From: Salpingoeca rosetta
Lineage: Eukaryota > Protista > Choanoflagellata
Direction: 5' to 3'
DNA: 64,000 nt
NCBI GenBank assembly: GCA_033442325.1
Contig: JAWQFM010000001.1
Location: forward strand, 1,768,246-1,832,245
Shown here piece after piece: positions 7,041-19,718 of the stretch. The position numbers and the translations under genes were made by a program. The notes beneath the pieces were generated by a model. That model searched no databases. It saw nothing but the letters and a program-made list of their open reading frames with translations, and had not been told where the DNA came from. Position 1 is the stretch's first letter, and each line of letters begins with the position of its first letter.

Positions 7041-10000
7041 ATGGCTGGCAAGTGGACCAAGCTTCGGCTGGCTGCTGCGACAAGCAGCGTCTTCAACGAC
7101 GTTGCTGAGATGCGTAAGCAAACGCTGAAGGAGGTAGGGGCTGCTTGCCTTGCCGTGCTTGCGCGCTGGCCTCAACCGCTGCCTGCAAATGCTCACATGC
7201 TGGTACACGCCCAACACATGTGCCACGGCTCACTGCACAACCTCACATCACCATGCATACCCGCGCATTCATTGTTTGTTCAGTGGGAGGAGATTCAGCA
7301 ACAGGCAACGGCACGGAGACAGGCCATTGAAAGCGCAAAGCTCTTCAAAAGGTGTGTGTGTGTGTTGGGGGTGTGTGTATGCGTGAATGGTGCTCCGCCA
7401 ACGTGCACTGACTTCACCACATGCACACACAACGCGCGTCCTGAAAGAAATGCGCGCCAAACCATTCATCCCGTGCAGAACTCTTCACCCGCAATGCGCC
7501 AAGACATGCAACCACCTACCTACCTTCACTCACATTTGCACACTCGCCCACACACACCGCAACCGTGACTCAGGTATCGGGACGAGGCCAACGATGCCCA
7601 GACCTGGATGGCGTCCCACCAAGAAGTTGCACAGGAAGACAACTACTCCGACCACAAAGACATTCAAGCCAAGATTCGGCTCCACGAGGTCTGCTCGCGA
7701 GCTATGCTTGTGGCTTCCAGTCGATGCCTCCTCACCCTTGCAGCTTTCATCACAGTTGTGGGAACAAGCACACATGCGATCACTCACACACACACACATA
7801 CACACGACATCTACACGCACAATTACATGCGCACTCACATGCAAACACACACACAGGCGTTTGAGGCGGAGGTGAATGGGTTCCAGCAGACGATTAATGA
7901 CCTGGCCAGCAACGCTAAGCACCTTGTTGAGGAAGGACACAGACCCGAGGACAAAGTCAAGCCCATCCAGGGTGAGAACAGCGACCACAGCCACTTCTTC
8001 CAGCAATCACATGCTTTCCTTGTCCTGACTGTGCTTCCTGCTGTGTGTGTGTGTGTGTGTGTGTGTGTGTGTGTGTGTGTTTGTGTGCAGGATGGGGATA
8101 CACTTATGCTCACATTGCCACGATTGCATTCGTCACCCCGTCCAGACGCACTGGAACAGCAATTTGAGCACCTCGTTGCATTGACACAACAGAAGAAGTG
8201 GGTGAATTGTTTGCCTCTTGCAGCTGCTTTGAGGCTGCTGCTCGCCTGCATTCGCGTCCAATCGCCATGGGGACCTGCCATCCACTCCAATCACCGCACA
8301 CATCCGCCACCCTACTCTCACGCGAGACAACACACGACCGTTACATGCCATGCCCGCACCACAGAGCGGCGCTGCTTGCGGCGCGAGACAGCACACAGGG
8401 CCTCTCTGCCTTCAACAGCCAGCACGGCGGCATCCTTGCCTGGTGCACAGAGACGACCGCCAGCCTCACGGCCGAGACGCAGCCAACGGATATTGCCAGT
8501 GCAGATGCGCTTCTCTCGCAGCACCAGCAGACCTGCGCCGAGGTCGAGGCACACCGTGCAAGGTACTGCCTACCTGTCTGTGTGGTGTGTGTGTGTGTGT
8601 GTCTGTGTGTGCGTGTGAAGAGAGTATGAATGTGTGTGTGTGCGTGTGAAGAGAGTATGAATGTGTGTGTGTGTGTGCGTGTGTGTGCGTGTGCGTGTTG
8701 GGGCTGGCATTCGTGTGCCGCATGCCATATCCTCACCCCCGCTGACGCTTTCTTCCTTCCTGCAGTGTGGACGCGGTGCTGTCGCTTGGGCAGCAGCTGA
8801 TTGACGCCAACCATTACGCAAAGAGCGATGTTCAGCACGCCTGCGCGCACCTGCGCGAGGTACGTGCTGTCGTGTGGCAATGACTGTGCCTTTGCGTGGT
8901 GTTGATTGAAGCTGCACGTGCAACGCACACAGCTTACAGAACACACACGTACATGCACCTACCACACAACACAACACACGTGTGCGCGCGCACTTTTGTG
9001 CTGATGACGGGCATGTGCCACTCGTTCTGCTGCATGACTGCCCTCTTGTATGCGGCGTGTTTGAGCGTGGTAACACGGCGTCCAAGAGACCATCTTCTGC
9101 TGATTGCGAGTGCAAGCATCGTCTTCCCATGCACTGATTGTCCCGCAACTGCAGGTGTTCGAGGAAGTGTGTGCTCTTGCTGAGAAGAAACGTGTGTTCT
9201 TGCAGCAAGCACGCGCGTTCCACATCTTCCAGCAGCAAGCAGACGAGGTCTGTACGTGTGTGTGTGTGTGTGTGTGTGTGTGTGCGTGTGTGCGCGTGTG
9301 TATGTTTTTGAGCGTGCACACGCTTGGGTATCACAAGCAGCAGAGTACCCAGTCCCTCCTTCACAGAACAACGTGCCCCTGCTCCTGTGTGTGTGTGTGT
9401 GTGTGTGTGTGTGTGTGTGTGTGTGTGTGTGCGTGCGTGTGCGTGTGCGTGTGCGTGTGTGTGTGTGTGTGTGTGTGTGTGTGTGTGTGTGTGTGTGTGT
9501 GTTTTCAGATTGAAGACTGGTTGGACGCGCAAGAAACAGCGGTGGCTGCGCTCGGGCTTGGGGCGACGATTGCAGAAGTGCTCTCCCTGCAGAAGAAGCA
9601 CGGTCAGTCCACCGATTCCATGATGATGATGGCCACATTAGCTGCGTTGTTATCTTGCCCTTGTCTCCTACTCCTTCCAACACATCCCATGATCCCATGC
9701 ACAAGTCCGCGTGCCACCACTATGTGTATCTGACCACCTCGATCGGATCATCTCACGACAACATCACATCATGTATGCGGCGATTCACAGCGTCGCTGCT
9801 CAAACAGATTGCTGCGCAGCGCGAGAAAATGAAAACACTCGCAGCGCAGGTGTGTGTTGTATGTAGGTGGGTGACTGGGTGCATATGACTGTGAGTGTGT
9901 GTATGTGTGTGAGACTGAGTCTGCATGTGTGTGCATGCAGGCGCTCGTGACGTACAGGAGAGAGGCAGGTTGACATGTTGGCTTGAGTGATCATGTGCGG

Positions 10001-19000: not shown

Positions 19001-19718
19001 TCCTCGCCGCTCGTTTGATGCGGCCAGCATGGCGCCCACCGTTGTTGCCTCCACAGCCACAGCTGTGGCCCGACGTTCCTCCGCTTCACCCCGGCGATCA
19101 CCGCTCAGCCCCCGACGGTCGCTGTCGCAGGGCCGGGATGGCGCAACTGCCGCTGCTGCTGGCAAACCACACCAGCTGTCACTGGCGCAGCACCAGGAGC
19201 CGGATAGCCACGACCCAAGCCAGGGACGAGGACCCACAGACAATGGCGACAGCGACGACGACGATGATGACGATGACGATGATGACGACGGCAAGACCAA
19301 CGGTGCCAGTGACGAGTATGTTGAAGTGGATGGTGCGGATGATGAGGTTGACATGAATGGGAACGATGACGCTCATGGTGGCGATGACTCGGACAGTTTG
19401 GACGGAGAGTTGTTGCCTCCAGACGTACCGCCCCCTTTGCTGGACGATGATGGTGCAAGCGACGATGGGTCGGATGACGGGTCAGATGCTGAGCAACTGC
19501 ACACTCATGGTGATTATGACGATGCACAGCAACTGCACACTCATGATGATGGTGGAGATGCGCAGCACCACCAAACGCAGCTCCCTGCACAGGACCAGAC
19601 GCGGCTCCAAGCGCGGCAGCAACATCCAAGTCAGCAACAGCAACAGCTGATTGCTGGAGCGATGCAGGGGGACGACAATGGAACCTCGTCTGAGGACGAT
19701 GCGCTGGCGGAGGTGTGA
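7041..19718 (+). CDS. Spectrin-repeat protein: N-terminal partial repeat, about 11 repeats (last one partial), then a Ser/Arg/Asp-rich disordered tail; many small exons
   Basis: Hand-spliced exons give repeated helix-A motifs ([88 protein letters not shown]) and motifs such as [25 protein letters not shown]. Last exon about 18825-19718. Confidence 0.9.
13762..13921. repeat. (AAC)n trinucleotide microsatellite, intronic
   Basis: Visible in a spectrin intron; a similar (AAC)n-(GAC)n tract lies at about 17200-17308. Confidence 0.95.

Follow-up and report, generated by a model that had tools for sequence, protein, structure and literature searches.

In this study, we show that positions 7041 to 19718 (+) of a 64,000-nucleotide stretch of the Salpingoeca rosetta genome (the window; contig JAWQFM010000001.1 of GenBank assembly GCA_033442325.1) hold one expressed gene for a short spectrin, a chain made of a lone helix C, ten full spectrin repeats, a half-repeat of helices A and B, and a disordered acidic tail, as delimited with a repeat profile. 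In spectrin tetramers, alpha0 and beta17 form one split repeat that joins the chains. In our judgement, which draws on structure models, there is an even chance that the two ends of the short spectrin are the complementary halves of one such repeat, in a joint of the tetramerisation type, and that they are used for end-to-end association. Since both half-sites lie on one polypeptide, the chain could then associate with itself; canonical spectrin networks need two different chains because their head-to-head joint is split between alpha and beta. Found in the closest relatives of animals, a conserved chain that carries both halves and has neither an actin nor a lipid anchor would amount to a third mode of building spectrin assemblies.

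Two half-repeats on one chain

The profile used to delimit the repeats has 118 positions and was built from fetched spectrins. On known chains, four alpha-spectrins open with a partial match at about positions 72–110, corresponding to helix C, and beta- and beta-heavy spectrins close with a partial match from 1 to about 61–67, corresponding to helices A and B (the envelope extended to position 90–96 in two beta-heavy chains). Among these profiled chains, the N-terminal helix-C partial occurs in alpha only and the C-terminal A+B partial in beta and beta-heavy only. The S. rosetta chain has both: its residues 9–59 match positions 73–111, and the last of its 12 units, which starts at residue 1125, matches positions 1–67 only. 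The original prediction, made by a model from the DNA letters, had described a lone N-terminal helix and a C-terminal partial repeat and had proposed a per-repeat profile as a check; both ends are borne out, and the profile returned a partial, ten full and again a partial unit.

The first 17 residues ([17 protein letters not shown]; 7041–7091 (+)), whose W-x-K motif is kept in orthologues, are too short to leave space for helices A and B before the lone helix. This helix, U0 (7092–7349 (+), residues 18–53), is encoded by exons 1–2 and would be the alpha0-type half of the joint; its R25 aligns with R28 of alphaI. It is followed by the first full repeat, U1 (7350–8404 (+), residues 54–161), which by profile and unit scoring is of the alpha1/alpha6/alpha14/beta-heavy-23 type, and by nine further full repeats, U2–U10 (8405–17764 (+), residues 162–1124), collinear with alpha4–12, beta8–16 and beta-heavy 21–29. 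Within this rod, exon 16024–16223 matches Pfam Spectrin (PF00435), the superfamily of three-helix repeats of about 106 residues in tandem, with 44 bits. The profile then delimits U11 (17765–18497 (+), residues 1125–1196), the C-terminal half-repeat of helices A and B and putative beta17-type half of the joint; its helix B runs one exon (18447–18557) past the segment quoted in the original prediction before the tail begins.

Pfam found no CH, SH3, EF-hand or PH domain in the orthologues, the family tails or the last S. rosetta exon, and RNA at the 5′ end agrees with this absence, which had been noted earlier by eye. For the PH domain, no Pfam family was obtained in five family tails at E up to 5, nor in the last S. 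rosetta exon. An SH3 domain is likewise absent from U7, the equivalent of alpha9, and no unit scores best on the dimer-nucleation repeats alpha19–20 or beta1–2.

Folding and docking of the two ends

Folding and docking used the orthologue of Salpingoeca infusionum (P0007), with the S. rosetta exons as rows of the alignment. In the AlphaFold2 model of its residues 1–205, a disordered stretch (1–39) is followed by a single helix (40–113) and then by helices B and C; this single helix is a free lone helix continuous with helix A of U1. In the model of residues 1048–1400, U10 is followed by helices A and B of the last unit, with a predicted local distance difference test score (pLDDT) of mostly 83–88. 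In this segment, the model has no third helix behind the last helix B; short helices at pLDDT below 60 and then disorder follow, and the orthologue tail has a pLDDT below 50.

Docking of residues 45–200 with residues 1048–1250 gave an interaction prediction score from aligned errors (ipSAE) of 0.67 in three of three runs; among three controls, the highest value was 0.00. At least 88% of contacts are common to the runs, the partner pLDDT is 83–84, and according to the docking tool this mark is attained by 51 of 78 solved complexes and by 2 of 108 mismatched pairs. The docked N-helix (residues about 50–96) lies parallel to helix A and antiparallel to helix B, which is the canonical triple-helix topology. 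Modelling the N-terminal helix with the C-terminal half-repeat, as had been suggested, thus brings the two orthologue ends together in silico in the manner of alpha0 and beta17. Searching the PDB with profiles points the same way: the N-terminal end aligns end to end with 3f31, 3lbx_A and 1owa (E 8e-19 to 4e-15), and the C-terminal end aligns with beta 1916–2076 (8iah_M) and with 3lbx_B 7–170, so that the matches span both halves of the solved tetramerisation complex 3LBX.

Conservation in choanoflagellates

The orthologues were obtained by searching one exon against a representative library, followed by local BLAST. Two are full-length, so that the search for the same architecture in other choanoflagellates proposed with the original prediction was successful: P0007 is a complete S. 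infusionum transcript open reading frame (ORF) of 1540 residues, 34% identical over 1405 residues, and P0021 is Monosiga brevicollis XP_001745484, of 1640 residues and 29% identity. Both carry Pfam Spectrin only (11 and 8 stretches, respectively) and have the same partial, ten full, partial layout with identical profile boundaries. Ahead of the W-x-K motif and lone helix they have 44–75 additional Ser/Pro-rich residues, for which AlphaFold2 predicts disorder. The lone helix, its exact boundary and the position of R25 are kept in the three species, and the preceding sequence varies freely. Assembled fragments P0019, P0022 and P0031 have the last repeats, half-repeat and linker in common with these chains, so that the C-terminal half-repeat and the linker following it are conserved in six sequences. 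Two word-indexed homology searches returned canonical alpha- and beta-spectrins only and no added orthologues, and the S. rosetta database protein was not among the 150 matches listed in the representative search. The short spectrin appears so far only in choanoflagellates.

The UniRef name of P0021, "PH domain-containing protein", was rejected, since Pfam finds no PH domain anywhere in that protein. The first repeat of the public P0021 model also seems to retain a short piece of intron (VYTLCMTLA).

Relationship to alpha-, beta- and beta-heavy spectrin

For each unit, a profile made from the three orthologues was compared with all repeats in nine chains (four alpha, one beta and four beta-heavy), and the scores display the old eight-repeat period of spectrins. 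The best diagonals for U2–U11 are alpha4–13 (and alpha12–13/alpha2–5) and beta-heavy 22–30, with beta8–17 following more weakly. U1 obtains 54 bits on alpha1, 54 on alpha6, 50 on alpha14 and 56 on beta-heavy 23, compared with 27–28 bits on alpha3 and alpha11, which would be expected under simple collinearity. For the two-unit window U0–U1, the best site is alpha0–alpha1 in three of the four alpha chains, with alpha6, alpha14 and beta-heavy 23 close; scores are about equal on alpha0–alpha1, alpha5C–6, alpha13C–14 and beta-heavy 22C–23. For U10–U11, the best beta site is beta16–17.

In a maximum-likelihood tree of single repeats, U2 and U10 fall in the class-4 clade (support 95) and U9 in the class-3 clade (support 97). 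The tree groups alpha1 with alpha6, alpha14 and beta-heavy 23 and places U1 outside class 3; approximately unbiased (AU) tests reject neither U1 with class 3 nor U1 with class 6. The per-repeat phylogeny that had been called for thus supports the class-3 and class-4 clades and leaves the position of U1 unfixed, by the tree as by the AU tests. In terms of repeat classes, U10 is class 4, U11 is class 5 (A+B only) and U1 is class 6, an order that is the same as in beta16, beta17/alpha0 and alpha1; chains joined head to tail would therefore show the repeat types in their canonical succession again.

The original prediction had read the chain as an alpha/beta hybrid, alpha0–alpha1 joined to about beta8–beta17. 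An alpha-type lone helix and a beta-type half-repeat do occur on one chain, but a hybrid origin does not follow, as the head is equally near some internal repeats. Similarly, the by-eye assignment of the body to beta8–beta17 agrees with the matrix of repeat classes, but alpha4–13 and beta-heavy 21–30 are equally collinear, and judged from its repeats the body may be described equally well as alpha-like. As the source of the head, an alpha gene, an internal repeat and a chain older than the split are all compatible with the data. By collinearity alone, U8 and U9 would be the equivalents of the ankyrin-binding beta14 and beta15.

The gene and its start

The coding region (7041–19718 (+)) consists of 39 exons and 38 GT-AG introns and has 1513 codons plus a stop. 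The exons are short, and the introns, of 91–344 nucleotides, are rich in (TG)n. The model was made by chaining spectrin-like open segments via GT-AG sites and was then refined with RNA and the two orthologues. The RNA check covered window positions 6301–12300, with two stranded raw RNA-seq runs and two RNA-contig runs, and in this range introns 1–16 are confirmed at base level by joints, contig pieces or a loose end. RNA places the donor of intron 7 at 8860 and not at 8872, and verifies the acceptor at 10409. The segments "HAALS" (about 10395) and "VSAQYQH" (about 14838) are intronic, and the orthologue alignment adds four codons at 12631–12642 and a mini-exon of 51 nucleotides at 13525–13575.

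The transcript starts near 7012, where an RNA contig of run X6 begins, and the strand of the reads switches within bin 6901–7100. In the RNA of the checked range, no joint or loose end enters the gene from upstream. As there is moreover an in-frame stop at 6939 and no ATG in 7012–7041, the ATG at 7041 is the start, and for upstream CH exons there is neither room nor evidence. The ATG at 7041, the stop ending at 19718 and the lack of upstream exons had been correctly called from the sequence, all the peptides quoted at that time are present in the spliced product, and the proposed RNA-seq check disclosed no CH-domain exons upstream.

These results bear on whether the gene model might be an artefact that has missed CH, PH or other exons of a protein that is in reality an ordinary beta-spectrin, which we consider very improbable indeed. 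The read check covered the first 5.3 kb of the gene only, and the M. brevicollis orthologue bears a UniRef label that mentions a PH domain. However, the transcript starts near 7012 with a gene on the opposite strand directly upstream, the S. infusionum transcript ORF, marked complete, has the same layout, and no PH or other domain is found by Pfam in any tail. At the other end, the last exon closes with a stop codon and is not followed by any acidic or PH-like exon; a search of 18800–26000 for one more 3′ exon, carrying an acidic Trp ending like that of the orthologues, found none.

How the chain may assemble

If the ends pair as modelled, the N-terminal helix of one molecule would insert between the C-terminal helices A and B of another, and this insertion would rebuild a full triple-helix repeat and join the rods end to end. 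A homotypic joint could lead to closed hairpins or to strands in which 11-repeat units follow one another head to tail, perhaps with two strands lying alongside each other. Such a homotypic contact and the resulting assembly are plausible; the modelling itself covers the docking of the ends. Lateral pairing of two strands is conceivable by analogy, since U4–U10 match, in our own mapping by collinearity of the numbering in PMC13545430, the beta-heavy segments 25–31 that overlap in tetramers and that form antiparallel homodimers with a dissociation constant (Kd) of about 0.2 µM (PMC13545430). A bolder proposal, which we hold to be fairly unlikely, is that the short spectrin is naturally self-complementary and polymerises head to tail, forming a filament or lattice that is independent of actin and possibly two-stranded, with its terminal joint tuned by the RRxS linker that follows helix B, and that it perhaps derives from an unsplit chain predating the alpha/beta split.

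Several points weigh against end-to-end association through a split repeat. The docking was run on the S. infusionum orthologue and not on the S. rosetta protein, and since a like complex of alpha0 and beta17 (PDB 3LBX) has already been solved, the pass may reflect likeness or fold memory; what docking shows is likeness, not binding. In the orthologue model, the low-confidence short helices of the linker could mask the joint site in cis. U0 scores best on alpha0, but weakly (18 bits vs 14 bits or less elsewhere), and exons past 12300 rest on GT-AG sites and on the alignment with P0007 and P0021. Moreover, a docking pass does not tell which member of the family binds, and self-pairing is not separable by docking from pairing with canonical alpha or beta partners; a canonical alpha0 and a beta-heavy-like partial repeat are also present in S. 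rosetta, and hence those chains could be the real partners.

It is possible, with a minor but real probability, that the short spectrin is instead an adaptor, extender or cap for other spectrins, its half-repeat binding canonical alpha0 and its N-helix the partial repeat of beta or beta-heavy. It would then insert between alpha/beta dimers or cap them, and its role would be to adjust how long or how stable the network is, not to build a polymer of its own. The S. rosetta genome does contain canonical spectrins, namely an alpha chain that has an alpha0 exon itself and a beta-heavy-like ORF that ends in a partial repeat; both ends of the short spectrin match the alpha0–alpha1 and beta16–17 constructs of the solved complex, near relatives of a true partner also pass docking, and a short spectrin lacking an actin or membrane anchor of its own would suit such a function. 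However, no evidence favors heterotypic over homotypic pairing: the models are equally compatible with both, and the two may coexist. A different view, in our opinion quite improbable, is that the gene is a truncated paralogue of the beta or beta-heavy type, in which the N-helix would be a leftover of truncation with no binding role and the protein would act through lateral antiparallel contacts of the rod, as the beta-heavy self-interaction domain does, or through motifs of the tail. From about residue 20 onwards, the whole chain is collinear with roughly the final 1150 residues of repeat sequence in animal beta-heavy spectrins, it includes the U4–U10 stretch that matches the homodimerising segments, and AU tests cannot reject U1 as a collinear class-3 repeat. 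Against this, the lone helix, its boundary and R25 have been kept in three species despite variable preceding sequence, the score of U1 is about 25 bits better against class-6 repeats than against class-3 repeats, and in the orthologue model the N-helix docks confidently onto the C-terminal half-repeat.

Comparison with known spectrins

As in the tetramerisation domain of alpha-spectrin (alpha0–alpha1; PDB 3F31, 1OWA and 3LBX chain A), the lone helix C of the short spectrin runs into helix A of the first repeat, and the equivalent of alphaI R28 is retained. Unlike alpha-spectrin, the short spectrin has no SH3-bearing repeat, EF-hand domain or dimer-nucleation repeats 20–21, and it has ten full repeats rather than about 20. 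Its other end resembles beta repeats 16–17 (3LBX chain B) and beta-heavy 29–30, where a full repeat is followed by an A+B half-repeat with the same profile end. However, the CH1–CH2 actin-binding domain, repeats 1–7 and the PH domain of beta- and beta-heavy spectrins are missing, and the tail differs. The short spectrin also shares with the beta-heavy self-interaction domain (Drosophila segments 25–31), for which antiparallel homodimerisation is documented, a homologous stretch of repeats before the terminal half-repeat (PMC13545430); in contrast to the short spectrin, beta-heavy retains an actin-binding head and a PH domain.

One polypeptide with both half-sites has been made artificially: an engineered mini-spectrin, a single chain of alpha0–5 and beta16–17, forms dimers and tetramers, with closed and bivalent head-to-head complexes (Harper et al. 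2010, described in PMC4466138). The mini-spectrin is man-made and its order mimics a hairpin, whereas the short spectrin is natural and has the alpha-type half at its N terminus, the beta-type half at its C terminus and ten repeats between them. A more distant likeness is with alpha-actinin, also a short rod of spectrin repeats, which self-associates in antiparallel fashion and whose family is regarded as ancestral to spectrins (PMC4550062). Unlike the short spectrin, actinin is built from four complete repeats together with CH and EF-hand domains, and none of its repeats is split.

The presence of spectrins in choanoflagellates has been reported (PMC4550062, citing Baines 2009); in the library searched, a literature search by the Monosiga accessions and by spectrin with choanoflagellate turned up no account of this gene or of its layout. 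The short spectrin would provide a simple setting in which to study the origin of the split repeat and what sets the strength of the joint. Genome editing exists for S. rosetta. Together with short fragments of the ends, it makes binding, oligomeric state and cellular site directly testable.

Linker, tail and other features of the gene

After helix B comes a conserved basic linker (18498–18881 (+)), delimited by the alignment of six family members, with RRxS-type motifs (G-E-L..LYRK..RxSVF..KRRSTL); lying right behind helix B, it is a candidate regulatory site. The disordered tail that follows (18882–19715 (+)) matches no Pfam family and contains the stretch [12 protein letters not shown]. The last 313 residues (1201–1513, basic linker included) are rich in Asp, Ser and Ala, with 17% Asp. 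The tails of the family (P0007, P0021, P0031, P0022, P0019 and S. rosetta) have in common the basic LYR+/RRxS linker, a run of prolines and an acidic end. At the very end, an aromatic-acidic or acidic-ML motif (DDWDI, DDDWDDLI, DDWEAEML, ...ETDML) is present in four of the five relatives, and P0022 ends in DDFDD; the S. rosetta tail, which retains the [12 protein letters not shown] stretch, has another ending (…EDDALAEV). These end motifs may be docking motifs.

Within the rod, U7 (13549–14429 (+), residues 693–806) is the weakest, degenerate repeat, with an Asn/Ser/Gly insert ([11 protein letters not shown]) in its B–C loop; it is in register with the SH3-hosting alpha9 and might be a hinge. 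The introns at 13750–13950 and 17200–17330 hold long microsatellites of the CAA/CAG/ACA type, which read as poly-Q, poly-N or poly-T open frames, and the intronic (TG)n runs resemble Cys/Val-rich coding sequence, so that lists of ORFs are inflated by both. Gene structure differs strikingly between the paralogues: the canonical spectrin loci at C1:606–614k (L001), C1:555–567k (L002/L003) and C8:428–438k (L004/L008) are long uninterrupted frames (2131, 3874 and 1881 residues, respectively), compared with the 38 introns of the short spectrin.

The divergent neighbour

Upstream of the short spectrin lies a gene on the opposite strand (3900–6952 (−)), which by eye resembles genes of the FKBP8/FKBP38 type: besides FKBP pieces it has several TPR-like ones and, at the C terminus, a hydrophobic membrane anchor; on its exon fragments, Pfam gives weak TPR hints only. 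Its exon 1 (6842–6952 (−)) was delimited by eye and by spliced RNA of the opposite strand. Its ATG is at 6952–6950, so that 88 bases separate the two start codons, as had been stated earlier. This spacer (6953–7040), which is defined by sequence, by the ends of RNA contigs and by the switch in read strand, acts as a shared bidirectional promoter and 5′ untranslated region. The 5′ end of the neighbour's transcript is at about 6975 (run X6), about 37 nucleotides from the short-spectrin start at about 7012, and one RNA contig (X4) fuses the two transcripts. Elsewhere in the window, the G+C content falls to 0.36 at positions 60001–62000, compared with about 0.55 in the rest.

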